A stretch of 56,312 nt of DNA from Macrostomum lignano (taxonomy: Eukaryota). A program made the position numbers and the translations under genes. Positions 15,501 to 52,256 of the stretch are shown here, one piece after another (positions within the stretch are counted from its first letter, which is position 1; each line of letters starts with the position of its first letter). The stretch covers positions 1 through 56,312 of the forward strand of contig NIVC01004183.1 in assembly GCA_002269645.1 (NCBI GenBank), given 5' to 3'. The notes under the pieces were generated by a model, which was not told the origin of the DNA, did no database searches, and worked only from the letters and a program-made list of their open reading frames with translations.

Positions 15501-18500
15501 GTAGTTAGACCTGCCATTACGTACGCCTCGGTTGTCTGGGTTAGCGCTACCCAGGTCAAAATCCATGCAGATTTGCTCAACACGATCCAGGGCAGAGCGT
15601 GTAGGCTTATCTGCAAAGCCACCAGGTCCAGGCCCTTTGCCGGCATGGGGGCCTTTCTTAATCTACCGCCTCTCGACCTCTTCGTCAGGGGTGAGGCGGC
15701 TAGAACGACGCGGCGTTTACTTGATGCCGGCGTCAAATTCCTTTACATGAGGGCACCTGCTAAGCGGAACCTCGTCCCGCATAGTGACCTGTGCCTCAAC
15801 ATTCTCAACGAGTGTCAGGCCAATCGCGTCTTCACCGATGGCATTGCCTCAACGCTCAACCTGAGACAACGCTGCTCCGTAGCTATCGACTCGCGCGATA
15901 CCATCAATGACCACTGGAACCCTGGTGAGCTTCACTGCTACACCGACGGTTCTAAGCAGTCAGCCAACACCGGTTTTGGTGTTGGAATTTTCCTGAACGG
16001 GAGGGTTATCGCAACCCACGCTCAGTACACTGGGGTCAACTCCAGTGTCTTCCAAAATGAAGTTCTTGCCATCAGCTCCTGCATCGCAGAGCTCCTCGCC
16101 ACTGGCGTTACCGGTAAGAACATCCTTTTCCATTCGGACAGCCAAGCTGCCTTGCACGCCATCAGTGGCTGTAGTACCAATTCTGCTACAGTCCTCGACT
16201 GTATCAAACTCCTCAACATGTTGGGCTCCACCAACAAAATCACCCTTAAGTGGGTTCCGGGGCATGTGGGGATCCGAGGAAATGAGTTAGCTGACGCCCT
16301 TGCGGAAGTTGGCGCCTCCGGCTCCTCTCTCGGTCCCTGCCCTTGTCCCTGCCCTTGTCCCGATTCCCGGCTGTGTCTTCGACTCGCGCATCAAAACGTG
16401 GATCAGGACCCAGCACCGCTCGGTTTGGGCGAACTGCACCACCTGCAGGCAATCCAGAGGCGCTGTCCCTGAGCCCTCTCACCAGCTCCGGAAGCTCCTC
16501 TTGCGCCTCTCGCGCGGAGACATCCGGGCTGCCACCATGACCCTCTCAGGTCATGGGTGCTTCTCTATGTTGTGACTGACAATGCTTGCGCAATACTGAC
16601 CACTGACAATTAACTATTGACCTTATTGAATGCGTGGGCGTATACTGTACTCAGACTAGAATGTGTAGGTTATTGCGTATCGATTTGGCAATGCAACGTG
16701 CAAGTAGGAGTTTCATCTCTATAAATATATCGTGAGCGAGATGTGTATCTCTGAACTCAAAAGCTTCAATCAAAGAAACTCTCTGTGTTAATTAGGACAC
16801 AACAAATGGCGACGAGCGGACTCCCGTACCCAGCGGAGTTTCAACCAGTACCAGGCGAACCTCCTGTGCCATGGGCAAGGTGGATCAAGTCATTTGAGAA
16901 CTTCCTGGTAGCTGGAGCTCTCGAAGAGGCATCAGAGAGTCGGAAAAAGGCGATCCTCCTGCATCTGCTTGGTGAGGAAGGACGCCGCCGAGCTGCAAAC
17001 GTCGATGCAAGCAAGTCGCTTCAGGAGACCAAAAAGGCACTGAAGGCGATTTTCAGCTCATCGAGAAGCGTCATAGCAGAGCGCTTCGCCTTTCGGCAGC
17101 GAGCCCAGCACGACGGCGAGAGCATCGGAGACTACGTGATGGCCCTGAGAGAACTGGCAACAAACTGCAACTTTGGCACCTTTCACGACGAAATGATTCG
17201 TGGAGCTCGGATTCAAAATCTTCCAAGGTGACAACAGAGTGATGAGCATCAGCGAGACTACGATCGAGTGCGACTTCCCCGGAATCTTCGACGGTCTGGG
17301 CCGGTCCAAGAGCTTCATTCACCGGACAAAGATCGACGCCTCGGTCAAGCCAGTGTCTCAGCCAATGCGGAAGCTGCCGATCGGCCTGAAGGACGAAGTG
17401 ACGTCAGAGATCAGCCGGATGGAGCAACAGGGCATCATTGAGAAGGTCGACGCGTCCGAGTGGGTTAGCAACGTTGTCGTGACGCGCTAGAAGGAGTCCA
17501 ACAAAGTTCGTCTCTGCGTGGATCTGCGGCAGGTCAACAAGGCGGTGATCGCGGACCGCTATCCGGTACCGTCAATCGAGGACCTATTAGCCAGCATCAA
17601 CGGCTCGAAGTGCTTCAGCAAGCTGGACCTGCGTCAAGGCTACCAGCAGATTCCGCTGCATCCAGACTCTCGAGGACTGACGTGCTTCATCACCGATGCC
17701 GGCCTGTACCAGTTCACCGTGGTGCCATTCGGGCTATCCAGCTCCGGAGCTGCCTTCCAGCGAGCCCTGCAGACGGTGCTTCGAGGAGCTCCTGGCGCCA
17801 TCAACATCGTGGACGACATCCTGGTGCACGGCAAGGACGAGACTGAGCACGACAAGAACCTCCGAGAAGTCCTAGGGCGGATTCATCGCGAAGGCTTCAC
17901 ACTCAATCGAGAGAAGTGCAAATTCTGACAGGCGAGCGTGGATTTCTTCGGATTGGTCATCTCTGCAGACGGCCTCAAACCGACCAAGTCCAACGTCGAC
18001 GCAATTCTAAGAATTCCTGAGCCATCAACGGTCGCGCAAATTCAATCGTTTCTCGGGGCAGTGAACTTTTTGCACAAGTTCATACCGCATTACTCAGCAA
18101 TTGCCGAGCCTCTGAGACAACTGCTCAAAAAGGACGCGGACTGGCACTGGGGTGAGCGAGAACGTACAGCCTTCCGTACACTCAAGTCAGCCGTAACCAG
18201 CAGCCCAGTGTTAGCTCATTTTGACTGCCAAGCTGAGACGTACGTCACCTGCGATGCAAGTCTAGACGGACTGGGGGCAGTGCTCAGCCAAGTACAAAAC
18301 GGAAAAGAGGTGCCAATCGCGTTCGCATCGAGAGCACTCAGCCCAGCGGAAAAGCGATACTCAGCAGGAGAGCGAGAAGCCCTAGCCTGTGTATGGAGCA
18401 TCGAACGCTGGCACTACTATCTATACGGCAGACGAGTAACGCTGCGCACCGACCACAAGGCCCTGACAACTCTGCTCGACTCGAAAGGCATGGGGCACAG

Positions 18501-21500
18501 GCCTCTTCGCATTCATCGATGGGTCGAGAGACTTCGCGGCTACGACGTCCGGTTTGAGCACATCCCTGGCGCTGACAACAAGTGCGCGGACATGCTGTCC
18601 AGATGGGCCACGACGGAGCGCGTTCCAGCCGAGGAGACCGATGAGGAGGGCTACGTCTACGCAGTCGTCGACTCGAAGACAACGCTGACGGCAGACGCAC
18701 TGGCAACAGCGACCAAGGAGGACGAAGTGCTGCAGGCGGTTTTGCGGTACATCTCGGGCGGCTGGCCAACGAAGGTGGACAGCTCTCTAAAGCCGTACTT
18801 CAACGTCCGCGAAGAGCTGTTCTGCTGGAACAACGGTCAGTGCCTCGGCCGTGGTGAACGCGCGATCATCCCGACGAGCCTGCGACTTCAAGTCATCGAG
18901 GAGGCCCACGAAGGGCATCCGGGCGTCGTTCGGTCAAAGCAGCGGTGCCGCGACACGGTCTGGTTTCCTGGAATTGACCGGCAGGTGGAGGACTATGTCA
19001 AGAACTGCACGGCCTGCACTCTGGCGGAGAAGTCCGGCAAGCCTCAACAGACGATCGTGACACCAATCGAGTGGCCAGATGGACCGTGGGACAAGGTTGA
19101 GATCGACATCTTCGGCGAGGTCGCCGCGGCTCCTCGACACCAGCGGTTTCTACTGGTGATCCACGACCTGTACAACAAGTGGCCGGAGATTGCAGCCATG
19201 GAAACCGTCACCTCTGCCAACATCATCAAGACGCTTCGGAAGCTATTCGGCCGGTGGGGAGTCCCGAAGATGCTGATCAGCGACAACGGACCCCAGTTCG
19301 TCAGCGACGAGTTCGAAGAGTTCCTGCGAGCCGAGGGCATCAAGCACAGCCGAGTGAGCCGGTACTACCCGCAAGGCAACGGCGGAGTCGAGCGATTCAA
19401 CCGGAGTCTGAAGGAGGGCCTGGCAGCGAACCTGAGGGCGGGAGCGAAGTTCGAGGACGCCATCGACCTGGTGCTCAAGACCTACAGGACCAGCCAGCAC
19501 GCTCTCACCGGGCTGACTCCAGCCGAGCTGATGATCGGGCGCAAGCTGCGGTCCGGACTGCAGCTGCTCAGGCCAACTCCAGTGCAACAGCGGGACGACA
19601 GCGATCTGCGCGACGCTATCACTGAGAGGCAAGCCAAGAACGCCGACTACACCAACAAGCGAAGGCGGGCTCGTGACTCTATGCTCCAGGCCGGAGACTG
19701 GGTCTGGCGACAGACGCCGCACCGAGCGCACAAGCTGGCGACCCGACTGAAGGAACCGCTAAAGATCGCCTCCCGAGCAGGGCGCAACACCTTCGTGCTG
19801 TCCGACGGTACAAAGTGGCAAGCGAGTCGGCTGGTTAAGTGCAACAGCCCACCGGCTGACAACGGCGCGGCCGACCAAGAGGACGACTGGTTCGATTTGC
19901 CGCTGCCGCCGGCTCCGCCCCCACGGACGGGCGAGCCGCCACCTCCACCTGAACTTCGAAGGTCAACTCGAGCTCGACGGCAACCGGCGCGTTATCCTCT
20001 TCCGGAAGGGGGGAGAATGTTGTGACTGACAATGCTTGCGCAATACTGACCACTGACAATTAACTATTGACCTTATTGAATGCGTGGGCGTATACTGTAC
20101 TCAGACTAGAATGTGTAGGTGATTGCGCATCGATTTGGCAATGCAACGTGCAAGTAGGAGTTTCATCTCTATAAATATATCGTGAGCGAGATGTGTATCT
20201 CTGAACTCAAAAGCTTCAATCAAAGAAACTCTCTGTGTTAATTAGGACACAACACTCTAGGCACCAGTACCTGCAGGGCAATGCCACCAACGCCATCTGC
20301 AGTTTCTGTAACTCAGGTGACGAAACCGCTGAGCATTTTGTCAGCATCTGTCCCGCCTTTACGCGAGCCAGACTCACTTACCTCGGGCCACACACATCTA
20401 TTACTGAAGCGTGCAAACCCGAAAACTTTAACCAGCTCATGCGCTACCTCCGGGCCACCCGCATGGCTGAACTCTCCTTTCCAGAGAGCACCATAGCTGC
20501 TGGCGACACTGGGGGACCTCCCTGGGCGGCGCCAACACTTCGTCCATAGCGACGCGTCGGCCGTTCAGGGATTAGCGGAATGGGCGTTCGCGCCTTCCCG
20601 CTGTGTCCCCCCGGGACAGCCCTGCAGCTAAGTCAAGTAAGTCAAGGGGGATGCTTGCTATCTGCGGGATGCTTGCTATCTGGGGGATGCTTGCTATCTG
20701 CGGGATGCTTGCTATCTGGGGGATGCTTGCTATCTGCGGGATGCTTGCTATCTGGGGGATGCTTGCTATCTGCGGGATGCTTGCTATCTGGGGGATGCTT
20801 GCTATCTGGGGGATGCTTGCTATCTGCGGGATGCTTGCTATCTGGGGGTGCTTACTATCTGGGGGATGCTTGCTATCTGGGGGATGCTTGCTATCTGGGG
20901 GATGCTTGCTATCTGGGGGTGCTTACTATCTGGGGGATGCTTGCTATCTGGGGGTGCTTGCTATCTGGGGGTGCTTACTATCTGGGGGATGCTTGCTATC
21001 TGGGGGTGCTTGCTATCTGGGGGATGCTTGCTATCTGGGGTTGCTGACTCTTGGAGGGGATGCTTGCTATCTGGGGGATGCTTGCTATCTGGGGTTGCTG
21101 ACTCTTGGAGGGGATGCTTGCTATCTGGGGGATGCTTGCTATCTGGGGTTGCTGACTCTTGGATGGGGGCTGCTTGCTATCTGAGGGATGCTTGCTGTCT
21201 CGGGGATGCCTGCTATTTGGGGATGCTTGCTATCTGGGGGATGCTTGCTATCTGGGGGATGCTTGCTATCTGCGGGATGCTTGCTATCTCGGGGATGCTT
21301 GCTATCTAGGGGATGCTTGCTATCTGCGGGATGCTTGCTATCTGGGGGATGCTTGCTGTCTTGGGGATGTTTTCTATTTAGGTGGAATGCCTGCTATCTT
21401 TGTGAAAGCTTTATTTTGTTGTGTTTTGGTTAATTCTATAAAAAAAGAAATTCATAGCAAGCGTATTTGTCCGTGACAGTTTTACTTGAATGAATAAGGT

Positions 21501-24379
21501 GATTATAAAATTGAAGAAGGAATTGGTTTTTTAAGAAAATTTGCTATTTTAATTGTTTTCCTTGAATTATTTTTTCCTTGCTTATTGGGCGCCCCAAAGC
21601 CCTAGATTGCTAGTTTAATATATTTTCATACGGAATTTCGGTCGTCTGGTTTATGAGGAAATAAATCTCGGGCCACCAGAATAAGTTGAAAATTTCCATT
21701 TCCCACTGAGGGGTTTGGAAGGGCCCGTTTTCGGGCTCTTCCCACCGAGCTGTCTGTGAACCTGCTGTCTCATTGAGTGCAAGTACAAGAACTGCCCATC
21801 AGACAGGGTTCACCTAGTGGCCTTTCCGGCGAGACAGCCTGTTAGTTAGTCTTCAATGGTTAGTTATTAATAGCTAAGAGTAATTTATACTCTTGCATAC
21901 AAGTATAAAGACGAGGGAGCTAGCTATGCCTTAGTTAAGCCTGAGTATTTAGATTGAGTAAACATGCAAAACTTTGATTTGCAGTTTACAAAACAAATCC
22001 CTCTTTTGCTAAGCGCAGTGTCTGTGTAAAAGCTTAAGGATGTCGCTCACGCACAAGCCCCACCGAGAATGGTCAGGTTAGCAACCCGCTACTTTCGTCA
22101 TTCAAGAGCCAAACCTGTTGACGAATTTTGCTTTATTTAATAAGAAAAGCGGGGCTATCCTGATATACATAACATGGAAACAATTGCCACCTCACCAGCC
22201 AAGCCTTCAGCTTCCATTCGTACAGCCTGCAGGCCGCAATCTCCAGCAGTAAATGAACCGCGTTCAGCGCAGCCCAGATGCGGACGCTGGTTGAGTCGCC
22301 GTGGTAGATGGAGACAAAGGCGAAGCTGGCAGCCACAGCAGCTACCTGTCTCACAATGCCGTGCCGACTGCCTCCCATGGGGATGTAGATGTGGCTGTAC
22401 ATGAAGGAGGCCAGCCCCCTGTCGAACACGCGCCACATCTGCCTGTAAGTATAGACCCGGCTGATGCAGTCGGGCCAGTGCGGCAGCTCGACTCCGTCAA
22501 TGCTGGACACGAGACCCGGCCAGCCGTACAGCTGCACGTAGACCAGCATGAAGCTCTGGCCATGCAGGTACATTGAAAACACGAGCCGCTTGTAGGGCAC
22601 GGACTCGTAAGACCGAATGCTCTCCAGAAATGCTCCAACAGGTAGGAAATGATGCAGCACCTGAAGCAGCAGCATCCACACCAACAGGCGAGTCGCTCGC
22701 CACGCCAGCAGCAGCAGCAGGTTCGGCTTCCACACCAGCCTGTCGGGTCTCTCAGCCTCCCGACAGAAGTCAGCAAAGGTGAGGATCGGGCCGGAAAAGT
22801 GCCAGGGCAGGTAAAATCCGTAAGCCAAAGCTCGGGGAAGGTGCAGTCTAAGGAACTGGAGCAGGCTCAGCTGCTGTGCCTCATCTGCAGGTTGGCGTCT
22901 CTGGTCCCGCAGCATTTGGTTGAGGCTGAGTCCAGCGGAGATGCAGCGGCAGTACAGGTAGCCAGAGATTGGGTAGAACAGAGATTCCATGTAGCCTTTT
23001 TGACTGAGAGTGCCAGTGTCAAGAATGTCAATCCAGTGATTTGAATTCTGCAGCATCAGAGCTGCCAGTCCCAGCGCCCAAACGGCGGCCCAAGAAAAAT
23101 AAGCCAGGACGATCTCACCGCAGAACAGCAGCAGCAGGTACAGCGATTTTCTGGCGCCAATCACCAGGACTGTCGCAGCGAATGTACACCCAGCGGTTGA
23201 TAGGTAGTGAACCTGAATTCATATTTTGAGACCGTCAATATGAGAGATGAGCAGATTAGGTTATAGAGGACTACGAGAACAACAGGAGCGTTTACGATAT
23301 TTTTGCATTGTGTGGTGGACATCCAAAAACAGGGTGTAGAGCACTTGACTACGGAGTGTTGGACACTTGAGAACAGGTTTGAGGACACTTGAGAATAGGT
23401 TTGAGGACACTTGAGAACAAGTTAGAGGACACTTGAGAACAGGTTTGAGGACACTTGAGAACAGGTTTGAGGACACTTGAGAATAGGTTTGAGGACACTT
23501 GAGAACAGGTTAGAGAACACTTGAGAACAGGATAAAGGGCACTTGTGAACAGTGCAACAGCTGTACAGTCTCATTAAAAATGCTAATTAGCTCACCCATC
23601 TCGGCGCTAATCGAAGAGTCAACTGACTGACCAGCAGAAATCCGAGACAAGCGAGCAAGTAATATTTATAACCGGCCATCATTTCCGACTCCAACGGTAT
23701 CGACAGAGATTCCTGTCAATTCCAAAGTGTATATAATTGTAAGTGTCTTGGTTTATGAATATATTACAATTACTATGAAGATTTTGATTTAACAGTTGCA
23801 TTCAAACTTTTGGCATAGCAATATATTTTGCCTCACCTGCCAATCGGCAAGCCATCCAGCGGTGAGCTGCTCCGCTGGCAGAACTGCAATGAAAAGAGAA
23901 TCGCATATGTATAAATAGTTAATGCGTCACACCTCGAACTCAAACATTCATGGCTCAAATGTGAAATATGAGATTGGTCATTTTTGGTGTTTAAAATGGC
24001 GTTCATTGGAATCGAAATGTCACTCATTAGATTCGATATGGCACCTTTATATCCTATTAATCCCATACACATTTTTTATTTATAATGCTTCATCAAGCGA
24101 AAGGAAGTCAACCAATTAATTACCTAGATTTGGCTGCGACCCAATGGCCTCATAGAAGTCGTAGGCTCCGTAGATAAACGCCGCCGCAAAGAGGACGGCG
24201 TACGCCAGCGTCTCCAAACGACTGGCGCACCGCGGAACCGCCACCGACTGGCATCCTTCGTCAACTTCCTCGAAATGTTTAACCGAAGCCTTAACTGGCC
24301 ACAGAGCTGGGGAGAGCCGATTGGTGGACTTTAATCTCAACTTCTTTTGAACTTCAACTTTACTGTTGTTGCTGAACAT
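12544..24379 (-). CDS. hhat: Hedgehog acyltransferase-like MBOAT protein, copy B (~573 aa, 6 exons)
   Basis: Exons 24379-24124, 23883-23837, 23712-23596, 23212-22196, 13934-13778, 12671-12544; same exon phases and near-identical sizes to copy A (47, ~115, ~1014, 157 nt); open frame of 1722 nt; catalytic Asp and His motifs intact. Confidence 0.9.
12786..13346. mobile_element. Non-autonomous TIR/foldback element in HHAT-B intron 5
   Basis: About 120-bp imperfect inverted repeats: CTACGCCAATCCCT..TTTGGAGCCAA.TAGCTCCCGTT..TTTGGGGATCTCTATGGGGAGAAATGGG (12808-12903) versus its reverse complement at 13224-13318. No TSD found. Confidence 0.7.
14146..14365. repeat. Minisatellite, 17-bp unit GGGGATGCTTGCTATCT (left part, split by LINE insertion)
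   Basis: Same unit resumes at 20646. Confidence 0.9.
14366..20645 (+). mobile_element. 5'-truncated non-LTR retrotransposon with RT, RNase H and CCHC finger (LOA/I-group-like), interrupted by a Gypsy element
   Basis: RT motifs SPGPDG, FRPISL, FLDIVGAFD, PQGGVL; YADD is changed to CADD (15126-15137) after a frameshift near 15100. RNase H: YTDGS, EVLAI, SDSQAA, KWVPGH..GNELAD. SGH..RHQ..C..C..ET.EH....C reassembles across the Gypsy insertion. 15-bp TSD GGGGGATGCTTGCTA at 14351-14365 and 20646-20660 (ambiguous within the repeat). Confidence 0.92.
16568..20254 (+). mobile_element. Ty3/Gypsy LTR retrotransposon (Mag-like), defective
   Basis: 237-bp LTRs at 16568-16804 and 20018-20254 with 2 mismatches; TGTTGTG..CACAACA termini; 5-bp TSD CTCTA; PBS TGGCGACGAG (tRNA-Ser-like) overlapping the gag ATG; PPT GAAGGGGGGAGAA. 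Domain order gag-RT-RNaseH-integrase (HHCC, D-D-E). Stops at 17488 and 17926, and a gag/protease deletion near 17199. Confidence 0.97.
20646..21400. repeat. Minisatellite, 17-bp unit GGGGATGCTTGCTATCT (right part)
   Basis: About 40 copies; contains variant blocks (GTTGCTGACTCTTGGA) also present left of the LINE. Confidence 0.92.
23355..23545. repeat. Minisatellite, 22-bp unit TTGAGGACACTTGAGAACAGGT, in HHAT-B intron 3
   Basis: About 8 visible copies. Confidence 0.9.
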
Positions 24380-26790: not shown

Positions 26791-27793
26791 GCCACATTAG
26801 TACAATTATATCGTTTTATTTTAATTATTTAGTAACTTACACTCGTTTAAATAACTTATAACTAATAACTTCTTAAATAACTTTAGTAACATCATTAACA
26901 ATGGTTAATATTTCATCTCTTTTATTTGAGGATTTCTATCAAATTTATTTAAAAAGTATGAATTATATGACTGCTAAATTATGAATTAAAATCGTCCTTG
27001 GATTTGGCTTAACTGTTTAAACTGTTGAGACGTAACCACGGAGAGGGAGGAATATCTCAGCCAGTTTCGTTTAATTTTAATTAGTTTTGCATAGAAATTT
27101 GCAGAGAAATATGTACAAAATTAGTGCTTAATATAGATTTTCAATACATAGTGTAATTATTTAAGTAGTAAAATTACAGCCAGAAAGGCACTGAAAAATT
27201 TACAACAGTTACTTTCTTAAAAAAGTTTTCGATTTTTAAAATTTAATTTTATCATATAGTTAAAAGTCTAGCTTAGCAAAAATACAATGACAAAATGGAA
27301 GCTTTTTGCTTGGAAGGGAAGCCTATCCTAAATTCAAATGATTTTCACCATTTTGAAAGGCTAAAAATCTCTATAACTCGAATATACGCTCGTACTATAG
27401 TAGTACGCTCGTAAATTAAACTAAAATTTAGAGTCTTCGTTAATGAAGTCATAATTGACACACCGGACCATATATATCAAATGAATTCTCAAAGGGAAGG
27501 CTCATTCACACAGCCATCAAATAACTAAGGAAAAATTTCGTCATGTGATTTTATGGATTAAAGATTAAAGATAATTCTGTCTAAACCCTGCATGCTATCC
27601 TACGTTAATTAAGCTTATTTTTGTGTTCTGTTAACAGTCGCCGAAATTCACGTGTGCAATACAAAAATTCACTGGGCGTATTGAATTGATTGAAGCCATT
27701 CATTACGTATAGATGTTCGATGAGAAGAAACCACAGGAGGAAAATTGACAATCCACAGAGTGTTTTTGCAAGTGAGCAAACTGCGGCAGAAGG

Positions 27794-29754
27794 TCACTTT
27801 TGCATGTCCGACACGTTGCCGTACACATTATCTGGTGCATTAGCGGTGCGAACCAACGCACTAAGCTGGTTGAGGTTTTCGTAGTCTGTAGACGACTGCC
27901 TGACTACGCCTTTGCCGCTATTCTGCGGCCGGAACTGGCGCGGCGCGATGCTCGGCGGCGCGTCGAATGCGCCGCTATCGACGCTCTCCCTGGCTACCGC
28001 CGCCCCGGGCGCAGTTGTCGTCATCATTTTCTTTTTTAGACTGGCAGCATCAATACGCCCGTAGAGGCCGTCGTCCTCTTGACTGCCAGCGTTTCGAAAA
28101 TCTCCGTAGGTGTCATCTCCGGTTGTGTTCAGCAGTTCTCCATAGGTGTCATCGCGGCTTGAGCTCAGCAGATTGCCGTAGGTCTCGTCAGCTGATTGAT
28201 TTCCCCCAACAACTCCGTAGGTCTCGTCAGCTGATTGATTTCCCCAACAACTCCGTAGGTCTCGTCAGCTAAATCAGCTAAAGCCGAACTGTTGTAGATT
28301 TCAAAGTCGACAGCCGAGTCAACAACAGGCTGGTGGCGGCCATCTGGACTGCCAGAGCGACGCCGGTTAGTGTTGGCGTTGACTTCACCGCCCAAGGTCG
28401 AGGAATTGGCAGAAGCGGAGCTACAGGCGGTACCGGTGATGGAATGGCATGTGGCATCCCTAGGGGTTGTGCGTTTTGAGCGTCTGGCATGCCGCAAGCG
28501 GAGCTTAATTGGCGCACCTGGAAAGCGTCGGTTGAACGCTTGGTGATGTAAACTGTGAAATCTGCAGAAAGATACAAACCAAAGAGCATATTTTTCTAAG
28601 CACCTTCTTGAGAAGGTGCTCTTTGGTTTGAGAATCTTCTCAAAAAGACGCAAGAATAAATGCACAAAAAACTGAGCAGAGCAGCCTCACCCAATCCAGC
28701 ATCTGCCTGGCATCCTCAGCCAACAAGTAGACCCGACCGCGGTGCTCGCCGAACATCGCCTCGAAGCTGAAGAACGGCAGCTGATCGCAGATGAGAACTC
28801 GACGCCTAGGGTCGGCATCCATCAACTGGCAATCCTCGCAGAGATGCTTCCTGCTCAGCGTCGCCAGCAGTTCATCCGGTGGCACGGACATCTTGCGCAG
28901 GTCCGTCACAGTGTTCAAATCGATGCAGCCTTTCGGTCGCTTGTTGCGATCGTTTTTGGAATAGCAGATCAGATGGAACCGGTTGGTGTCCTGGGTGGTC
29001 TGGCCGCGGACCAGCGATAGCTCAAAGAACTGTCGCTTCCAGTGCTGTGTCGCGGAGAAGGTGCAACAATTAGATGATGCATCAGAAAAAAGTGCCTGAA
29101 AAGATATTTGAGTCCTTTGGACGCCACTTCGTCCAGAGCCTTCAGGACACAACTACTTCCACAGGGTCTTTCAGAAGCCACAACTTATTCCACGTTGTTT
29201 TTCAGAGGACACAACTACTTCCACGGGGTCTTTCAGAGGACACAACTACTTCTACGGGGTCTTTCAGAGGCCACTACTACTTTCGCGGGGTCTTTCAGAG
29301 GACATAAATACTTCCACGGGGGTCTTTCAGAGGCCACAACTACTCCCACAAGGTCTTTCAGAGGACACAACTACTTCCACGGGGTCTTTCAGAGGATACA
29401 ACTACTTGTAGCTATGTTAAAATGCGTTTCACAGCAAAAGCCGGTCATGATGAAAAAAATCTACCACTGTAATTTTGAATGCTCTACAGCGACGTTACTC
29501 ACCCGCCTTGAAAAAGTCACAGTCCCGGGTTCTCGACCGGGGAACTCAATGGGCGACATCACCAGCCAGCTGCTGTAGCGGGTCTCGGCGTCTTGTCTGT
29601 CTGTCAGGTGCAAATTCTCGTCGCTGAAAGAGGGGCAAAATGGGTTTTATTATATTGAAAATTCTGTGCAAAAGCTACGATTTTAATTTTTCAAACGAGT
29701 AATCATTTTTACTTACCTTCCCTGAGGCCAGATGCATCGTTGCAGAAAGCTCAT
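27794..29754 (-). CDS. GAB/DOS-like PH-domain docking protein with tyrosine-rich tail (one 1-bp frameshift in the sequence as given)
   Basis: Exons 29754-29717, 29623-29503, 29044-28691, 28517-28389, 28329-27794. The PH domain (YSSWLVMSP..HWKRQFF..YSKND..RPKGCIDLN..VYLLAED..MLDW|VRQLSSACG) parallels the GAB1 PH domain. The last exon is in frame only if G4 at 28242-28245 is G5, as in its sister repeat. The 59-nt intron 28388-28330 is inferred. Confidence 0.7.
29130..29405. repeat. Minisatellite, ~31-bp unit CGGGGTCTTTCAGAGGACACAACTACTTCCA, in a GAB-like intron
   Basis: About 9 visible copies. Confidence 0.88.
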
Positions 29755-30125
29755 ACCTGTTGCTCTTAGTTGTATTCGTCCACTGAAAACCTGTTGCGAT
29801 AAATGCGAAATATATAGGAAATTCAGAAATTCACCTGAAAGACCTGGCGCAGGTTGAAAGCTGCTAACTATACAGTCTATAAATTAGCGATGGTGCCAAG
29901 TTTATAAAACTATTGGATCTGATAAAACTGATTAAATGTGTCAGCTGGCTCTGCACAGCCTTGTATATCTCTCAGTCCTCTCTTGATATAGGCTATGTAG
30001 CTTTTATTGGAATGCTTTCAGCAAATGACCAGGCTTAAATTTCTGTAGCTACAAGGAAATTCGGTGCAGTATATACGCTTTCCTTTCCAGACTTTTATGC
30101 TGGTAGAATTCATACAGATACTAAC

Positions 30126-31924: not shown

Positions 31925-33415
31925 AAGACTGTCTCTCTTTAGTCTGACACTTGACTGTCTCTCTTATGTCTGACACTTGACTGTCGCTCTTATGTCTGAC
32001 ACTTGACTGTCTCTCTTATGTCTGACACTTGACTGTCTCTCTTATGTCTGACACTTGACTGTCGCTCTTATGTCTGACACTTGACTGTCTCTCTTATGTC
32101 TGACACTTGACTGTCGCTCTTATGTCTGACACTTGACTGTCTCTCTTATGTCTGACACTTGACTGTCGCTCTTATGTCTGACACTTGACTGTCTCTCTTA
32201 TGTCTGACACTTGACTGTCGCTCTTATGTCTGACACTTGACTGTCTCTCTTATGTCTGACACTTGACTGTCGCTCTTTTGTCTGACACTTGACTGTCTCT
32301 CTTTAGTCTGACACTTGACTGTCTCTCTTTTGTCTGACACTTGACTGTCTCTCTTTAGTCTGACACTTGACTGTCTCTCTTTTGTCTGACACTTGACTGT
32401 CTCTCTTTAGTCTGACACTTGACTGTCTCTCTTTTGTCTGACACTTGACTGTCTCTCTTTTGTCTGACACTTGACTGTCTCTCTTTTGTCTGACACTTGA
32501 CTGTCTCTCTTATGTCTGACACTTGACTGTCGCTCTTATGTCTGACACTTGACTGTCTCTCTTATGTCTGACACTTGACTGTCTCTCTTATGTCTGACAC
32601 TTGACTGTCGCTCTTATGTCTGACACTTGACTGTCGCTCTTATGTCTGACACTTGACCCTCTCTCTTAGGTATGACACTTGACTGTCTCTCTTATGTCTG
32701 ACACTTGACTGTCGCTCTTATGTCTGACACTTGACTGTCTCTCTTATGTCTGACACTTGACTGTCTCTCTTATGTCTGACACTTGACTGTCGCTCTTATG
32801 TCTGACACTTGACTGTCGCTCTTATGTCTGACACTTGACCCTCTCTCTTAGGTATGACACTTGACTGTCTCTCTTATGTCTGACACTTGACTGTCTCTCT
32901 TATGTCTGACACTTGACTGTCTCTCTTATGTCTGACACTTGACTGTCTCTCTTATGTCTGACACTTGACTGTCTCTCTTTTGTCTGACACTTGACTGTCT
33001 CTCTTTAGTCTGACACTTGACTGTCTCTCTTTTGTCTGACACTTGACTATCTCTCTTATGTCTGACACTTGACTGTCTCTCTTTTGTCTGACACTTGACT
33101 GTCGCTCTTATGTCTGACACTTGACTGTCGCTCTTATGTCTGACACTTGACTGTCTCTCTTATGTCTGACACTTGACTGTCTCTCTTTTGTCTGACACTT
33201 GACCCTCTCTCTTAGGTATGACACTTGACTGTCGCTTTTATGTCTGACACTTGACTGTCTCTCTTATGTCTGACACTTGACTGTCGCTCTTATGTCTGAC
33301 ACTTGACTGTCGCTCTTATGTCTGACACTTGACTGTCTCTCTTTTGTCTGACACTTGACCCTCTCTCTTAGGTATGACACTTGACTGTCTAAAGTCTGAC
33401 ACTTGACTGTCTCAT
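31925..33415. repeat. Minisatellite, 26-bp unit TCTGACACTTGACTGTCTCTCTTATG
   Basis: About 57 copies with patterned variants. Confidence 0.95.
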
Positions 33416-34064
33416 CTGACATCCGCCACCTCCTTTGCCTGAGACTTCTCTGCTCCTAAACCTACTTGCATTTATAACTAATGCGCTACATCATTCACTA
33501 CTCACTAGTAGTATATTTAGAAGCGTATTTGCGACTCGTTTCTTTTTAAAAATGATTCTAAAAAGCGATGTTTAGACCAGCCCAGGCATATTAAAATTTA
33601 AACTGAAAAAGTCAGAAAATTTTGATTTGGTTCATTTTTTGCTCTCGGCTGCTGTCGTGCCGGCGTTGCTTTTTTTAAGTGGATTAAACAAAACCACTTG
33701 AGACCCCGCTAGCTTAAAGTGATTAGTAAAAAAAAAGAGCAGCGAGAGAGAGAGAGAGGAGAAAGGGGGGATCAGCTGATGGCACCCGCTTACCGTCACA
33801 AATTCTCTGGGTTATTTTGGTTGGCATTCACAGGTCTAACAGATTGTAAGCCAAGGTAATTTTTTCTATTGTTCAATCATTGCAACCCCCTGTTTGGAGC
33901 TGCCAACAAAAAGTGATCATTAAATTTTGCAATCATTCGCAATTAGTTGCTTATTATTTCTGGTTTTTGTTGCATCGGTGTTTCGCTTAGCTACCAAATA
34001 TTAGCGCGTTTGTTGCATTGTTATCTATGAAATTCGGCTGCGGGCAACTATTTCATTGGGTGGA

Positions 34065-35175
34065 ATGCCATTTCCCTAATCTTGGTCCTTTGGTGGGACG
34101 CCATTTCCCTTAATTTTGGTCCTTTGGTGGGACGCCATTTTCCTTTAATCTTGGTCCTTTGGTGGGACGCCATTTCCATTAATCTTGGTCCTTTAGTGGT
34201 TGGAACGCCATTTCCATTAATCTTGGTCCTTTAGTGGGTGGGACGCCATTTCCCTTAATCTTGGTCCTTTAGTGGGTGGGACGCCATTTCCCTTAATCTT
34301 GGTCCTTTAGTGGGACGCCATTTCTATTAATCTTGGTCCTTTGGTGGGACGCCATTTTCCTTTAATCTTGGTCCTTTAGTGGGTGGGACGCCATTTCCCT
34401 TAATCTTGGTCCTTTAGTGGGTGGGACGCCATTTCCCTTAATCTTGGTCCTTTAGTGGGACGCCATTTCTATTAATCTTGGTCCTTTGGTGGGAAGCCAA
34501 AAAAGGGAAATGGACCCTTTAATTTTGTTCCTTTGGTGGGACGCCATTTTCCTTTAATCTTGGTCCTTTAGTGGGTGGGACGCCATTTCCCTTAATCTTG
34601 GTCCTTTAGTGGGACGCCATTTCTATTAATCTTGGTCCTTTGGTGGGAAGCCAAAAAAGGGAAATGGACCCTTTAATTTTGTTCCTTTGGTGGGACGCCA
34701 TTTTCCTTTAATCTTGGTCCTTTAGTGGGTGGGACGCCATTTCCCTTAATCTTGGTCCTTTAGTGGTTGGAACGCCATTTTCCTTAATCTTGGTCCTTTA
34801 GTAGTTGAAACGCCATTTCCCTTAATCTTGGTCCTTTAGTGGATGGGACGCCATTTCCCTTAATCTTGGTCCTTTAGTGGGTGGGACGCCATTTCCCTTA
34901 ATCTTGGTCCTTTAGTGGGTGGGACGCCATTTCCCTTAATCTTGGTCCTTTAGTGGGACGCCATTTCTATTAATCTTGGTCCTTTGGTGGGACGCCATTT
35001 TCCTTTAATCTTGGTCCTTTAGTGGGTGGGACGCCATTTCCCTTTAATCTTGGTCCTTTGGTGAGACGCCATTTCCCTTAATCTTGGTCCTTTAGTGGGT
35101 GGGACGCCATTTCCCTTAATCTTGGTCCTTTAGTAGTTGGAACGCCATTTCCCTTAATCTTGGCCCTTTGGTGGA
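34065..35175. repeat. Minisatellite, 34-38 bp unit CCATTTCCCTTAATCTTGGTCCTTTAGTGGGTGGGACG
   Basis: About 30 copies with higher-order duplicated blocks. Confidence 0.95.
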
Positions 35176-36132: not shown

Positions 36133-39084
36133 GTGTATTTAGACTCGCACTGAGCTGTTGTAAAAAAAGCACTCGTCCAACTTTGAGTTTGCCCGACACG
36201 GTCGCACATCTCATTTGCCCAGCAATTTTTTATGCCTCAAAGCATCTCCCAATCGAAACTAATTCGCCTAATTCCTGCACAAAGCTGGCTTAAAGCTCTT
36301 TAGTCTTTCGGTCACCGATTGCCAACTCAAAGGCCAGGAAGCACTCAGCTCAAATAATTTTGACACTGACATGGAGAGTAAAGTAAGATATGAGGATTGG
36401 CTCTCTGTCTCACCTTCTAGCGGACACCTTTTCTCCTTTTTTCCTTTTTTGCAGGTATTTTTCTACGGATATCCCACAGCCCAAGCGGAGTCCATTAGCT
36501 AAATTCAATTAGACAAAAGCTTTTTTTGGCTTTAAATCATTGTGCGTTGTTTTCTCTTTTTCTCTTTTTGCGAGTTTCACATGGTCGGAGCAGCAAAAAA
36601 TGATTCACAATAGCGTCATTAAACAGTTCAGTTAAACAAAAAAATTCCGGCTTCGAAAGTTTCTAAATCTGCTTGACAGGGCGTGTCATCAGCCGCTGCT
36701 AGTGAGGCTTCTTGAGGCTAAAATTACATAATGGGAGAACTGGGGAATTCCTACCGTGGACTGCGCGAGGGACTGACGACTGTTTTCTCCACTGACACGC
36801 TCGTCAGAGCCTCCCACACAGAGAGAGCTTTCACCTTTCAAGGCGCGAAGCGTCATCTTTGTCATCCCGAATGGGGAGGGGGTTGTGAGGAGGCTGTAAC
36901 CGCGATAACCAAACCTTGCACCGCACCCGATGAGGCTCCAGCATCCTGAACGTCCGGCCCAAATCCACAGCCATCTATGCCTGAACATTGAGGTTTCCTC
37001 AATACTGCTCGCCGCTGTGCATGGATGGGACGGCAGCGGCCATCTTTAATGGCGGACAAGCATTTCCTGGACAGTTGATAGAGAGCCACCCCCCCCCCAG
37101 CATCCGCAATGCTGGCGGATAGGAAGTTATGGCAGCTTCATCAATATGGAGTCTTGTTCCTCGGAGCTCGCCTTTGCTGAGCTGACCCATCCGAGGCCGG
37201 CTCCATCTGCCCGCCTTCCTGAGCAGGAAATAGACAGAGAGAGACACAGACTGCAAAAGCAGCCTATTTAGTCCAGGTGAACCGGCCACACCCGGTGCAT
37301 GGCCGGCGTTTTATATTCCCCACGCATTTCCCCTCCTGACGAGATCTCCCTCCATCTGGGCAATTATCATTAATTGCTGCCGGCCAAACTCGCTGCGCTT
37401 TCGATTGCGTTTGCGTAACCCGCAACAACAGTAAACAATGAAGACTTCCTGACTACAGGCCCGACTCTGTTGGAGACCGGCTTGGCAACCAAAGCAGACT
37501 GTTCTGGAAATTCGACAGAATAACTTTAAATCAGTATATTGAAGTTGAACTCATCCACGGGCCTCCCTAGCCTTCTGCTGCTCTGTTTGCCTAAGACAAA
37601 TCTCCCAAATTGCGCTGCTGGGCCCTTCAAAAAATCAGTCTTAAAACTTCTCTATACTACTCGAATATTCAAGCCAGGAAAACTTCGTTGGATGTCGTGT
37701 CGCAGCATCCTTCGGTCAACAATCAAACTTCCTGTCGGAGTAGAGACAGAAGGGTTGGGGGGGGGGCTCGAAGCGCAAGCCGGAAGAAGCGAGTTCCCTT
37801 CTCGTTTCGGCTTGCGCACTTCATGTTTATAGATGCGGCTGTATAGTCTTATTATTTTAGAAGGGCCCGACGGCCTTGTTTTGTTTGAGCTGGCGAGGGC
37901 GGGCCAGCTGAGTAGACGCGGACCGGACACGCGCGGCAGGACAGCTCCTGGAGCTCCTCTTGAGCTGCTGCATGGGCCGACGGCTTGCCATCGCACCGAA
38001 CGAATCGAACAGAAAACAAGAGAGGAGGGGAGAGGAGAGACAGGGGAAAGCAAAGGAAGAAAAAGTCAAACAGACTGGAGAGTTTGTCGACTCTTGGGGT
38101 CGTTGGAAAAGCTCCAGTCTGAGTCTCTTACCTTGCTGGAGTGCCGGATTTATTTCACAGGATTCCCTGGAAACACGAAGTTTTGGAGCCTACATGTATT
38201 TTATTCTGAATCAACTTTCTTAAATGATGGACAATGTGGATGGATTGGCATGTGTCAGGGGGCAGAGCAGCTTGACTGTGCTCAGAAGTCAGAATTGCCG
38301 TCAGCGCTGGCTGTGGAACCATGTCGCCGAAAGCGTTGCGCAACCCTCCTGTGATGATTAAGCGTATTATTAAGACTATCAATTGTCTATGGATGCACAA
38401 GAGTTGGATCGCATTGACAATTTACTAGTGAATTTTCAGACATTATTCTACAGTAGAATTACAGTTTTATTAACTGTTTACGCTCTTACAATGGCACAAA
38501 AGATTATACTAAGAAATTTCGCGAATCAACGTAATATATATGCCTATAGATATGCTGTGAAGATTGAATATTAAACTTCCTCTCAGTTTTTCGACTCCCG
38601 AGTCAGAGGGGGGTTTTGCCCCACCCCTACTGCACCCATGCAGGCTTATCCTGCAGATGGTCTGTAGACACACCATAGAGCTAACCCCCATCATTCGATC
38701 CCCAACCCTGCCCCCAGCGCGATCAAACCAGAAGATCTGTCACCCGCTTCCCTTCCGGTTGCAGACTCTGAGCTCAAAGCAAGCAGGAGCAGCGGGGGGA
38801 GGGGTTCGGGAGCAGTTTCATCGGCAACCTCCCCCCCCCCCCCTATACCCCCTCCTGATCCGAAACTCCAGGTATCATCAGATATCAGGACTCCGGCTTG
38901 CACCGGGGACAGCTATACAGCCTTATAGCTGACTCCATATTTTTCCTTGAAATGCCTAACTCGAATTTTACCGAGGCATAGCTGTGTGTGCACAGAGCTA
39001 GCGGGTCTGCAGTCAGTTCATCGCACGGTTGATGCCGATGCGTTTTTAACCTTTATGTGGTCTGCTATGTGATAGCACCGCTCC

Positions 39085-39935
39085 CTCCGCCAGCCTCTCT
39101 ATCTCCCCCTCTTTCCCCCTCTCTCCATCTCCCTCTCTCTCTCTCCCTCATCCTCTATCTACCCTTCTCTATCTCCCTCACCCTCTATCTACCCCTCTCT
39201 ATCTCCCTCATCCTCTATCTACCCTTCTCTATCTCCCTCATCCTCTATCTACCCCTCTCTATCTCCCTCATCCTCTATCTACCCCTCTCTATCTCCCTCA
39301 TTCTCTATCTACCCCTCTCTATCTCCCTCTCTCTATCTCCCTCATCCTCTATCTACCCCTCTCTATCTCCCTCTCTCTATCTCCCTCTCTCTATCTCCCT
39401 CCCTCTCTCTTTATCTCCCTCTCTCTATCTCCCTCCCTCTCTCTATCTCCCTCATCCTCTATCTACCCCTCTCTATCTCCCTCTCTCTATCTCCCTCTCT
39501 CTATCTCCCTCCCTCTCTCTTTATCTCCCTCTCTCTATCTCCCTCCCTCTCTCTATCTCCCTCATCCTCTCTCCCTCTCTCAATCTCCTTCATCCTCTAT
39601 CTCCTCTCTCTCTTTATCTCCCTCTCTCTCTCTATCTACCCCTCTCTATCTCCCTCATCCTCTATCTCCCTCATCCTCTTTCTCCCTCTCTCTATCTCCC
39701 TCTCTCTATCTCCCTCTCTCTATCTCCCTCTCTCTACCTCCATCTCTCTATCTCCCTCATCCTTTATCTCCCTCTCTCTATCTCCCTCATCCTCTATCTC
39801 CTCTCTCCATCTCCCTCTCTCTCTATATCCCTTCCTTCACTCCCCTCTCTATATCTCTCTTTCATTCAATCCCCCTTTCCATCTCCCTCTCCATCTCTTT
39901 CTCTTTCTCTCTCTATTTCTCTATTTCTCTATTTA
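39085..39935. repeat. Polypyrimidine CT(A)T-rich low-complexity array upstream of Islet
   Basis: Units such as CTCTCTATCTCCCTCATCCTCTATCTACCC are visible. Confidence 0.92.
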
Positions 39936-40913
39936 ATTAGACCGAAATTTCACAACGCCGAAAATTCTGCATGTTCCTTGTTATGCGCTCGTATCAAGTT
40001 TCTACTTCCATGCTAATATTGATCAATCTGCATGGACGCTTAACTTTATGCCAATCGACTCAGCATCATTTTTGGTGGGCGCTTCGATTTTATACATCTT
40101 ATCTCATGACCTCTCCTCTCTTTCTTTCACTCTCAGTCTGTCTATCGCTCATTTTTATGTGTCTACCGTCAGCATGAAGTTGTCTTCTGCACTACAGCAA
40201 AACTGCAGCTGACTTAAATAACTAATACAGAACCTGGATCAAGTGCGGGCCACTTAGGATTTGGGATTAAAACAGTGTAGGTCAAGATTGGGAGAAAATA
40301 GCTCTGGAAAAGAAATGTAACAAAGTGTATGCCATAACAAAAAGAGAGGAAAGACCACCCGCAGAGCAGAGCTTAATTGAGGAAGGGACTATCACAGGTT
40401 TTACTTTAAACTGGACACCAGTCAGTCCAATTGTGGCTTTCATTCATTTCAAGACACTGCCAATCATATTCAACCAATGTTTCTACGAGCTACTTTCGTC
40501 TATGGTCAAAACACCATAGGCATTGAAGCTTAAGACACAGACAGAGCAGTTAAATTCGGACAAAGTTACTCTGATGAAGGAACAAAAAATACCAGCACGG
40601 CTTTGGTCATAGACAATCGTCTAAAAAGTGGGTTGAATCTGTCTTAAATTGAATGCTTGACTTCTTAAAAAAATGAGCCAACTGAGCCTGGGATCATACC
40701 ATTTTAATCCTTAGTGGGAGAAGCAAGCTATTGAACTTGAAGACTTATATTGCAGTGTAACACTGCCACATTGAGTATATTATTCATGCATCTAACCTGA
40801 TTGAAATCAAGCTATTGCAGCAGTTCAAGTGTTTAAGAGGCAAGCGACTTATAGTTCGCAGAGGCCTTCTCCTTAGGCCCTTCCATTGGTGGAGCACTGG
40901 CGGGCCTTAGCAG

Positions 40914-40952: not shown

Positions 40953-41030
40953 TAGCGAGCTCGTGTGCGGCGGGGGTTAATCTTCTGCATAAATGGTCGC
41001 ATTCGTATTGTAGCCAGACTTGCTGCAGTC

Positions 41031-50000: not shown

Positions 50001-51019
50001 AGCAGATCCTGAGTTCCTCATCTGAAGTTGAGCAGGTCCTGAGTCCCTCACATGCAGTTGAGCAGGTCCTGAGTCCCTCACCTGCAGTTGAGCAGATCCT
50101 GAGTTCCTCATCTGAAGTTGAGCAGATCCTGAGTCCCTCACCTGAATTTGAGCAGATCCCGAGTTCCTCACCCGCAGTTGAGTAGGTCCTGAGTCCCTCA
50201 CCTGCAGTTGAGCAGATCCTGAGTTCCTCATCTGAAGTTGAGCAGGTCCTGAGTCCCTCACATGCAGTTGAGCAGGTCCTGAGTCCCTCACCTGCAGTTG
50301 AGCAGATCCTGAGTTCCTCATCTGAAGTTGAGCAGATCCTGAGTCCCTCACCTGAATTTGAGCAGATCCTGAGTTCCTCACCCGCAGTTGAGTAGGTCCT
50401 GAGTCCCTCACCGGGAGCTGAGCAGGTCCTGAGTCCCTCACATGCAGTTGAGCAGATCCTGAGTCTCTTACCTGCAGTTGAGCAGATCCTGAGGCCTTCA
50501 TCTGAATTCGGGCAGATCCTGAGTCCTTAACCGGGAACTGAGAAGATTTAACATGATAGCGTCATATTTAACTGCAATAAACAAAATGCATGGAAAGCTT
50601 GTCTTACCTCTCCCCAGCGCACTCTGAACGGCATACCAATGATTGCGTCATCGCCTGTCAGACACGATCCGAGACAGCACCTTGGCGGCCAGCATCATCT
50701 GCAGCATCCTAGCCATCTTCATCATTCTCAGCAACAGCATCAGCAGCAGCAGCAGGATGCTCAGTCGGCCTATTCAGCCGCTGCCGCAGCCGCCGCGGCC
50801 GCTGCTGCCGCCGCTGCAGCCTCGGCGCCTTGGTGCCACGTTGTGGAGACTGCGACTCTGGCTCACAGCGAGGCCGACAGCTCACAGCAGCAGCCGCTGT
50901 TCCAGCAGCTCGTTGGCGCCTACCAGAGCCTGTTCGCCGCCGACTCGGCAGAGCTCGCAAATACGCCTGTGATGCCGACGCAGACTATGAGAGGAGCAGG
51001 AACTCGGAGAGGACGATGA
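41031..51019 (+). CDS. isl1: Islet-class LIM-homeodomain transcription factor
   Basis: Exons 41031-41311 (LIM1), 44222-44550 (LIM2), 48042-48421 (homeodomain), 50618-51019; phases 2/1/0 are consistent. The homeodomain [57 protein letters not shown] matches Isl1 as recalled; Islet-specific G.PM.A.SP.RHD and PW..FQQLV motifs are present. The exact C-terminus is uncertain. Confidence 0.96.
41312..43310. repeat. Minisatellite, 33-bp unit GGTATTATGAGCATGATCATTGAATAGTCATCT, filling Islet intron 1
   Basis: About 60 copies; the first unit starts at the splice donor. Confidence 0.96.
43940..44160. repeat. Minisatellite, 23-bp unit CATCATCTCCGCCCTCTCCTCTG, upstream of the Islet exon 2 acceptor
   Basis: About 9 copies. 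Confidence 0.9.
44630..45205. repeat. Compound minisatellite: 25-bp TAGCTTCAGGTTGACAGTTTCAGGC followed by 14-bp TAGCTTCAGGTTGA
   Basis: About 8 copies of the 25-mer, then ~25 copies of the 14-mer. Confidence 0.95.
45780..47190. repeat. Two abutting minisatellites: 24-bp CTTGTGTCTGTGACTTGTGCTAAG (to ~46430) and 23-bp GATTGTGTCTGCAGATTTGCCGA
   Basis: Visible arrays sharing a TTGTGTCTG core. Confidence 0.95.
47647..47808 (+). other. Candidate 162-nt cassette exon in Islet intron 2 with an in-frame stop
   Basis: Strong acceptor TTCTTTCTTTAATACTTTTAG|G and donor AAG|GTGGAC; phase 1-1; TAA at 47805-47807 in the Islet frame. Confidence 0.4.
48472..48955. repeat. Minisatellite, 42-bp unit GATTAGCAATCCATTCTATTCCTGCATCCGTGATGTTGGCTA, in Islet intron 3
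   Basis: About 11.5 near-identical copies. Confidence 0.95.
49557..50540 (+). repeat. Minisatellite family X, 30-bp unit CTGAGTCCCTCACCTGCAGTTGAGCAGGTC, in Islet intron 3
   Basis: About 33 copies; the same family occurs at 52257 (inverted) and 53675. Confidence 0.95.
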
Positions 51020-52250: not shown

Positions 52251-52256
52251 CTACTC

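Follow-up and report, generated by a model that had tools for sequence, protein, structure and literature searches.

Members of the Gab/DOS/SOC-1 group among docking proteins are recognized by an N-terminal Gab-type PH domain, proline-rich SH3-binding sites that include the atypical PxxxR form, and multiple tyrosines that dock SH2 domains (PMC2747914). The atypical site for the C-terminal SH3 domain of Grb2/Drk, PxxxR or in its full form PxxxRxxKP, is common to Gab1-3, Drosophila DOS and C. elegans SOC-1 (PMC2747914). Here we describe a gene of the flatworm Macrostomum lignano, Mlig028745, one copy of which (BOX15_Mlig028745g3, henceforth g3; annotated at 28278-29754) lies on the minus strand of contig NIVC01004183.1 in assembly GCA_002269645.1 (Mlig_3_7) of the inbred line DV1; this whole contig of 56,312 bp is the window to which all positions refer. 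In the databases the gene is labelled as a hypothetical or PH-domain protein and nothing more. We propose, with a probability of roughly 0.6, that it encodes a short (412 aa), divergent docking protein of the Gab/DOS/SOC-1 lineage with an acidic tyrosine-rich tail, and that the break in the reading frame of g3 is an artefact. Mlig028745 would then be the first described flatworm protein of the Gab lineage, and an unusually reduced one.

The protein begins with a Gab-type PH domain that retains the invariant core residues and carries an insertion of about 40 residues, followed by a post-PH motif (WVR.L...CGM, comparable to WV..LC..CG[LM] of the Gab/DOS/SOC-1 proteins), a short proline-rich linker and a disordered acidic tail rich in tyrosine. 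This order is that of the Gab/DOS/SOC-1 proteins; the terminal pair of YxxPhi tyrosines may be a further likeness, and one YxN motif of the tail, YENL, recurs in Gab proteins of molluscs. In size it is comparable to the divergent SOC-1 (PMC2747914), the other Gabs having 600-850 aa. It further departs from the Gabs in the PH insertion itself, in two substituted basic residues of the PH domain and in a lineage-specific tandem array of [DE]xYGxPhi units in the tail. Adaptors of the IRS/Chico, Dok and FRS2 types likewise place a membrane-targeting module ahead of a disordered multi-tyrosine tail, and FRS2 uses YxN sites for Grb2 together with a pair of SHP2 sites; in contrast to these, the M. lignano protein has no detectable IRS-type PTB domain and its PH domain is specifically Gab-like. 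By way of analogy, near-identical tyrosine motifs have arisen by tandem duplication or recombination of short DNA units in the EPIYA region of H. pylori CagA, in Chlamydia Tarp and in the YxxP array of p130Cas, and such repeat-built arrays can gain or lose SH2-docking sites stepwise. On the best-supported reading, the M. lignano protein is a variant, specific to its lineage, within a known adaptor family, and its tail was rebuilt around a tandemly duplicated acidic YGxPhi motif.

Gene copies and the N-terminal domain

Mlig028745 occurs in three homeologous copies: g3 in the window, g2 on a sister contig (L001) and g1 on a second one (L003). The g2 and g1 copies each encode 412 aa (P0001, PAA51814.1, and P0005, respectively), and the annotated product of g3 (P0004, PAA48306.1) has 250 aa. 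The triplication of the gene, like that of its paralogue (paralogue B, below), is explained by the three homeologous subgenomes of DV1 (PMC10733133). The gene models derive from RNA-seq reads assembled with StringTie and from a de novo transcriptome, a common name prefix being given to transcripts with an identity of 95% or more (PMC5730564). Those of g1 and g2 join the PH exons to the last exon and read through the tyrosine-motif array; Mlig028745 is hence a real, transcribed gene whose last exon carries the array, and the array belongs to the PH-domain transcript, as the first-pass annotation of this DNA had assumed. The four mapped exons of g3 have canonical splice sites throughout (Table 1). 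For exon 3 an alternative acceptor (tttcag/GCACTT), which would add 17 residues, is ruled out by the annotated proteins, which use acacag/CACTGG. With the conceptual protein as query, three clusters of M. lignano proteins were recovered, at identities of 96%, 84% and 55%. A literature search with the gene identifier Mlig028745 gave no match, and neither phosphoproteomic nor functional data came to light.

Searched exhaustively with an HMMER profile, 1.84 billion representative proteins yielded only four weak matches beyond the M. lignano paralogue. Two of these, mollusc Gab proteins (P0011, E 7e-7; P0013, E 1e-4), match the PH domain and are alone in doing so outside Macrostomum; the relatives of P0011 carry the names GRB2-associated-binding protein 1/2/3-like, DOS or daughter of sevenless. 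The other two, a ctenophore repeat protein (P0012) and a nematode KH-domain protein (P0010), matched the repetitive tail only and were set aside. In BLASTP, residues 21-188 align with the Gab PH domain of P0011 along its full length (32% identity, 170 aa), and the alignment spans WVRQLSSACGMPD, which pairs with WVRNLCSVCGMKPD of the mollusc protein (WVRxLxxxCGM motif). Comparison of the M. lignano family with 18 Gab/DOS proteins by hhalign gave a probability of 98.2% (E 3e-14), with the match confined to residues 25-184. Exon 2 aligns with the Gab beta1 strand (GWLxKSPPEK), and the Gab-invariant residues W55, F60, L62, Y81, R157, M168, W171 and V172 are kept in the M. lignano proteins.

An AlphaFold2 (AF2) model, built after the 18 Gab sequences had been added to the alignment, displays a beta-sandwich of the PH type and a C-terminal helix, the core reaching a predicted local distance difference test (pLDDT) score of 70-83; it is usable for the PH core alone, and a run with a two-sequence alignment was discarded at pLDDT 30. 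The top Foldseek matches of the model are the PH domains of TAPP1, ARAP3, kindlin-3 and Akt1; a phmmer comparison of P0001 with PDB sequences found no match. Together, sequence comparison and modelling identify the N-terminal region as a predicted Gab-type PH domain. Between beta4 and beta5/6 it harbors the insertion of about 40 residues (103-142; window about 28790-28910; MSVPPDELLATLSRKHLCEDCQLMDADPRRR...), which is disordered in the AF2 model, contains a predicted short helix and two conserved cysteines, and is present in both M. lignano paralogues and in none of the compared Gabs.

The name given in UniRef/UniProt to P0002, a predicted protein from the ML2 assembly, points in a different direction, namely to an IRS-type PTB domain and thus to an adaptor akin to Dok, FRS2 or IRS. 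A stretch reading FSFEA resembles the FxFE(A/S)GRR motif of such domains, and FRS2 has YxN sites as well, along with SHP2 sites. However, P0002 is a frame-shifted gene model, the Pfam IRS/PTB models gave no match to P0001-P0003 even at E<=10, the exhaustive profile search and hhalign point to Gab PH domains only, and in the Foldseek ranking the PH domains come first, with no PTB domain above rank 32. We therefore regard an IRS-type PTB domain as exceedingly improbable.

The tyrosine-rich tail and its array

The tail encoded by the last exon contains nine tyrosines, in the motifs EIYNSS, ETYGVV (twice), ETYGNL, DTYGEL, DTYGDF, GLYGRI, DYENL and NVYGNV (27794-28329, minus strand), precisely as the first-pass annotation had listed them. 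Seven are of the form YG, eight fit YxxPhi, and three fit YxN, the last count agreeing between the motif scan and the earlier listing; nearly all have acidic residues at positions -1 to -3. In 1e5 shuffles of the tail composition, the seven YG, the eight YxxPhi and the presence of an acidic residue within -3 to -1 were each significant at p<1e-4, and they stayed so when one of the two identical units was dropped, with the qualification that the units are related by descent and hence not independent. Seven of the tail tyrosines make up an array, whose units read [DE][DET]xYGx(L/V/F/I) and recur every 12-13 residues, a distance that also separates the tyrosines of neighbouring units.

[quoted passage not shown] Unlike this pair, ITAMs normally reside in the tails of transmembrane receptors, and no transmembrane segment was detected in the M. 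lignano protein; there is a single strict pair here, a candidate ITAM by sequence, and its counterpart in paralogue B has a 9-residue spacer, so that the strict match is not conserved there. Beyond the array, DYENL and VYG(N/C)V stand 20 residues apart and retain their tyrosines in both paralogues; in Gabs a C-terminal tyrosine pair (BTAM) binds SHP2/CSW, and the Gab consensus sites YLDL and Y.EIDF differ from these sequences.

In light of these features we propose that the acidic tyrosine sites would be phosphorylated by tyrosine kinases and that the phosphorylated tail would offer SH2 proteins a multivalent platform on which to dock. The three YxN sites might be bound by SH2 domains of the Grb2/Drk type, and the neighbouring YxxPhi pairs, together with the C-terminal DYENL...VYG.V pair, by proteins with tandem SH2 domains such as Csw/SHP2 or Syk. 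A Syk kinase is present in flatworms, namely SmTK4 of Schistosoma (PMC2820527). Judged from its motifs, service as a phosphotyrosine platform is the most likely role of the protein. The eight YxxPhi motifs could, in their unphosphorylated state, instead be sorting signals recognized by the mu subunits of clathrin adaptors, making the protein an endocytic or trafficking adaptor; the fit of 8/9 tail tyrosines to YxxPhi and a PH-like module that lacks the conserved basic residues of Gab would accord with this. Such signals, however, are normally found on membrane proteins, in their cytosolic tails, and not in soluble adaptors, the acidic flanks and the YxN motifs suit a kinase and SH2 logic better, and the homology is to Gab; we consider a sorting function highly unlikely.

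Several observations weigh against a Gab-lineage docking protein with a working tail. The match to the Pfam PH model falls slightly short of the threshold (23.7 bits against a gathering score of 25.1). The beta1 lysine of Gabs (WLxK) and the beta2 arginine (WKRR) are replaced by M35 and Q58 in both M. lignano paralogues; in the alignment 16/18 Gabs have the lysine (the other two being a gap and a misaligned sequence) and 18/18 have the arginine. From the literature on the Gab1 PH domain we take both positions to participate in phosphoinositide binding, and membrane recruitment may accordingly differ from that of Gab. In the M. lignano protein, the motif scan detected no PxxxRxxKP, PxxRxxKP, YxxM (the p85 site) or YxxP (the Crk/PLCgamma site), whereas the mollusc Gab P0011 has two PxxxRxxKP sites as well as YxxM and YxxP. 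A short stretch, PVPPVAPLLPIPRP, is present that might bind SH3 domains, and the sole PxxxR (P364-R368) is not followed by KP and is not kept in paralogue B. Thus, the GAB/DOS likeness claimed by the first-pass annotation holds for the PH domain, by HMMER and hhalign, and does not extend to the canonical docking motifs. Profile comparison with hhalign detected no homology between this tail and Gab tails; the only traces of Gab in it are the shared YENL and a weak local BLASTP match of SGAFDAPPS to SGLYDVPPS, in which the Gab motif YDxPP may survive as FDAPPS. The fast evolution of the linker and array (omega 0.71) also fits weak constraint, and the proposed phosphorylation and binding of Grb2 and SHP2/CSW are predictions at the level of motifs. 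Finally, the frameshifts of g3 could be real, this being a separate copy and redundant homeologues often decaying.

The history of the array can be followed in the DNA. Tandem Repeats Finder (TRF) reports a repeat of period 38 at 28176-28270 (2.5 copies, 98% matches, score 183) and one of period 36 at 28100-28183 (2.3 copies, 77-82%), and the array arose by tandem duplication of 36-39-bp units, the last step being a perfect 39-bp duplication. The two newest units, U1 and U2, are identical at 39/39 nt in g2, which bears out their earlier description as near-exact 39-bp tandem duplicates; in this contig U1 has GGGG where U2 has GGGGG. The perfect duplicate is found in g1, g2 and g3, with one substitution (S to L) in it in g1, and its presence in all three copies indicates that it predates the homeologue split and is not an assembly artefact. 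The next unit, U3, has the first 17 nt of U1 and U2. That the older units are decayed copies, as had been suggested, is sustained for U3-U5, whose mutual DNA identity is about 60-65%, and is weak for U0 (EIYNSS) and U6 (GLYGRI), which at about 40-45% are alike only around the tyrosine codon.

Paralogue B (Mlig030690/Mlig011291), also present in three homeologous copies, shares about 71% amino-acid identity with Mlig028745 (paralogue A) at a dS of 0.34. It has counterparts of U4 (DDEPYGEL) and U6 (GVYGRI) only, along with DYENL and VYGCV, and Y297, Y324, Y384 and Y404 are invariant across A and B. Omega between the two is 0.39 in the PH domain, 0.71 in the linker and array and 0.50 in the C-terminal tail. 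Five units may have been gained in A or lost in B, either course being compatible with the low identity among U3-U5 relative to the A-B identity. Array growth is proven only for the newest pair of units; the first-pass view that the number of docking sites is growing is accordingly borne out for the last duplication and not beyond it, since paralogue B could equally have lost units.

No reliable polymorphism in the number of coding units was detected among the three copies or the ML2-derived proteins. The short ML2 proteins P0002 (387 aa) and P0006 (390 aa) were rejected as unit variants, their missing segments being either GT...AG or frame-changing and hence predictor artefacts; such pseudo-introns are the pattern expected of a gene predictor that steps over assembly frameshifts. 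Likewise, P0003 and P0007 (YDDPRH versus YGRID) do not form an indel-error pair, as their DNA differs by substitutions and a 3-bp indel, and they are uninformative on the error rate. In this respect the array is unlike those of CagA and Tarp, bacterial effectors of proven copy-number polymorphism and proven phosphorylation that have no sequence relationship to the M. lignano protein, in which phosphorylation is putative. The nematode protein P0010 (Angiostrongylus costaricensis, VDM54160.1) is built of about 30 tandem 13-residue units, (QDTYGAVHPTANA)n; it is unrelated to the M. lignano protein, yet the T-Y-G core and the 13-residue period are alike, and the match is repeat-driven only.

Copy number does vary in intron 2, where the array of a 31-bp repeat is longer by about 210+25 bp in g1 than in g3, and the matching intron of paralogue B contains the same repeat family, varying by 154-524 bp among copies. 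These changes in both paralogues indicate that tandem-repeat turnover is active at the locus, in keeping with the first-pass suggestion that the array arose by the process seen in the introns. The occurrence of the 31-bp array in matching introns of A and B (29144-29407 in the window; L002 and L005) also marks it as old, yet unstable in length by hundreds of base pairs. Genome-wide, tandem and simple repeats make up 15% of M. lignano DNA (PMC5730564).

The same data could be read as those of a neutrally drifting, slippage-prone low-complexity tail, in which the SH2 matches are incidental, any signalling role being left to the PH domain and the conserved C-terminal block. The omega of the linker and array, the apparent sufficiency of two units in paralogue B, the abundance of tandem repeats in the genome and at this very locus, and the ease with which motifs as short as YxN and YxxPhi arise by chance would all agree with this. 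On the other hand, none of the duplications disturbed the reading frame or the [DE]xYG core, every alignable tyrosine is shared by the two paralogues, and the context of the motifs is strongly non-random with respect to composition. Moreover, acidic residues upstream of tyrosine are typical of tyrosine-kinase substrates, and the tails of this family work as phosphotyrosine platforms (PMC2747914). We hold a neutral array to be a possible explanation, though clearly less probable than a docking tail.

Should the array work as a phosphotyrosine platform, it would offer a compact natural series for the evolution of docking-site number on a signalling scaffold: one genome has paralogues with two and with seven units, each in three homeologous copies, and since M. 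lignano permits RNA interference and transgenesis, the effect of extra sites on signal output can be addressed. A bolder version, which we advance as a speculation with the odds well against it, is that Macrostomum swapped the Gab repertoire (Grb2-SH3 sites, YxxM, YxxP and a PIP3-binding PH domain) for an acidic YGxPhi array whose 12-13-residue spacing mimics ITAM/BTAM geometry and which would recruit several tandem-SH2 enzymes of the Syk or SHP2/Csw type simultaneously, its valency being tuned stepwise by tandem 36-39-bp duplication (two units in B, seven in A). Were this the case, a soluble Gab-derived scaffold would be an endogenous eukaryotic counterpart of the repeat logic of CagA and Tarp.

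The interrupted reading frame of g3

In g3 the frame set by the true acceptor (28517) is closed by a stop at 28278, which lies upstream of the array. The first-pass annotation had followed an open reading frame at 28165-28665, which is not the frame delivered by splicing, and had held that restoring one G in U1 is sufficient. A second G is missing from the run at 28392-28394, outside the stretch which that annotation covered, and it is the short run there that truncates the deposited protein to 250 aa. With both Gs restored the product is identical to P0001, and the intact frame ends at the TGA at 27794-27796. Apart from the two missing Gs, the last exon of g3 equals that of g2, and this identity extends without any further difference to the whole of 27700-29800, introns as well as exons; over the same interval g1, which has both Gs, differs by about 25 substitutions.

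A comparable lesion is found on the g2 contig (L001 about 12988-13132), where a 1-bp deletion in a C-run breaks a neighbouring MBOAT/HHAT-like exon at the equivalent of window position 22837; this exon is intact there in the window and in g1, and the annotated MBOAT product on the g2 contig begins only downstream of the break. Loss of one base from a G/C homopolymer is a typical residual error of consensus sequences from PacBio continuous long reads (CLR). Three scattered 1-bp G/C-run deletions in otherwise identical stretches on different contigs, each truncating an annotated protein, favor an artefact. Mlig_3_7 was assembled from PacBio reads with Canu and polished by Pilon with Illumina and RNA-seq reads (PMC5730564), and such polishing would be poor where copies are identical because the reads map to several places. 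It is thus quite probable that the frame break of g3 is a PacBio homopolymer error left unpolished amid near-identical copies.

A true young pseudogene, that is, a homeologue which suffered two slippage deletions in G-runs after the multiplication of the genome, would encode only the PH domain and 37 out-of-frame residues. That g3 is a separate locus is evident from its flanks, which differ by ~3% from those of g2, and the existence of three homeologous subgenomes, the slippage-prone nature of both runs and the truncated product in the deposited annotation would suit such decay. Yet zero substitutions stand against two frameshifting indels over 2.1 kb in the comparison with g2, the g2 contig bears the equivalent deletion in another gene, all three events are of the kind typical of CLR consensus errors in regions where Pilon, given multi-mapping reads, would be weakest, and the ML2-assembly models P0002 and P0006 skirt this very exon by means of odd frames and pseudo-introns. 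We judge a pseudogene to be rather unlikely and retain the assembly-error reading. A look-up of P0001 and P0005 returned NCBI genome contigs only and no independent RNA-derived contigs from which the G-run lengths could be read. For users of Mlig_3_7 the case implies that single-base homopolymer deletions truncate annotated proteins of near-identical homeologues, here to 250 instead of 412 aa.

Features of the locus and the remaining contig

Table 1. Positions of the features of Mlig028745 g3 and of other elements in the window.
Feature	Position	Strand	Remarks
Exon 1 (ATG, MSFLQRCIWPQG)	29717-29754	-	Splice mapping; translation as in P0004/P0001; annotated gene start 29754
Exon 2, start of predicted PH domain (SSWLVMSPIEF...FSRR)	29503-29623	-	Splice sites tttcag/gtgagt
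Intron 2 tandem array, 31 bp x 8.5	29144-29407		TRF; copy number varies among gene copies
Exon 3, remainder of predicted Gab-type PH domain with ~40-residue insertion	28691-29044	-	Splice sites acacag/gtgagg
Last exon: post-PH motif WVRQLSSACGMPD, Pro-rich linker, Tyr-motif array, conserved C-terminal block	27794-28517	-	Acceptor ttccag
G-run of 3 (4 in g1 and g2)	28392-28394	-	First frameshift; annotated 250-aa product ends at 28278
U0, DFEIYNSSALADL, first tail Tyr	28270-28308	-	Resembles the other units at motif level only
U1 and U2, newest tandem duplicate, ADETYGVVGGNQS twice	28193-28269	-	U1 28232-28269 (38 nt here), U2 28193-28231 (39 nt); TRF 98% matches
G-run of 4 (5 in g1 and g2)	28242-28245	-	Second frameshift, within U1; site seen in the first-pass annotation
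Older units U3 ADETYGNLLSSS, U4 RDDTYGELLNTT, U5 GDDTYGDFRNAGSQE, U6 DDGLYGRIDAASL	28037-28192	-	TRF period 36, 77-82%
DYENL, YxN and YxxL motif	27872-27886	-	Invariant in both paralogues
NVYGNV, YxN and YxxV motif	27812-27829	-	QVYGCV in paralogue B: Tyr kept, Asn not
MBOAT (PF03062) exon, first copy	7047-7837	-	In ORF 7016-8062
MBOAT (PF03062) exon, second copy	22191-22981	-	In ORF 22133-23164
Retroelements	14239-16472; 16785-20025	+	Between the MBOAT copies
Islet/Tailup-type LIM-homeobox exons	40965-41315; about 44190-44590; 48089-48445	+	Two LIM-domain exons and a homeodomain exon
Dense tandem arrays	20646-21399; 31927-33413; 34057-35174; 39057-40016; 41300-43330; 46290-47210; 48500-49030; 49596-50501; 52235-52948		Periods 18-44 bp, up to 57 copies

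Elsewhere in the window a 793-bp exon of the MBOAT family occurs in two copies that lie 15 kb apart and are 96.6% identical; the open reading frames (ORFs) containing them differ at their N- and C-terminal ends, and a tandem gene pair or alternative exons are both possible. The two retroelements between them comprise a LINE-like pair of reverse transcriptase/RNase H ORFs and a Gypsy-type gag-pol spread over four frames (Pfam RT_RNaseH, Integrase_H2C2 and rve). Downstream on the plus strand, the exons of the LIM-homeobox gene are separated by long introns full of tandem arrays. The dense arrays of the contig give rise to long spurious ORFs on both strands and agree with the repeat content of 15% given above for the genome.

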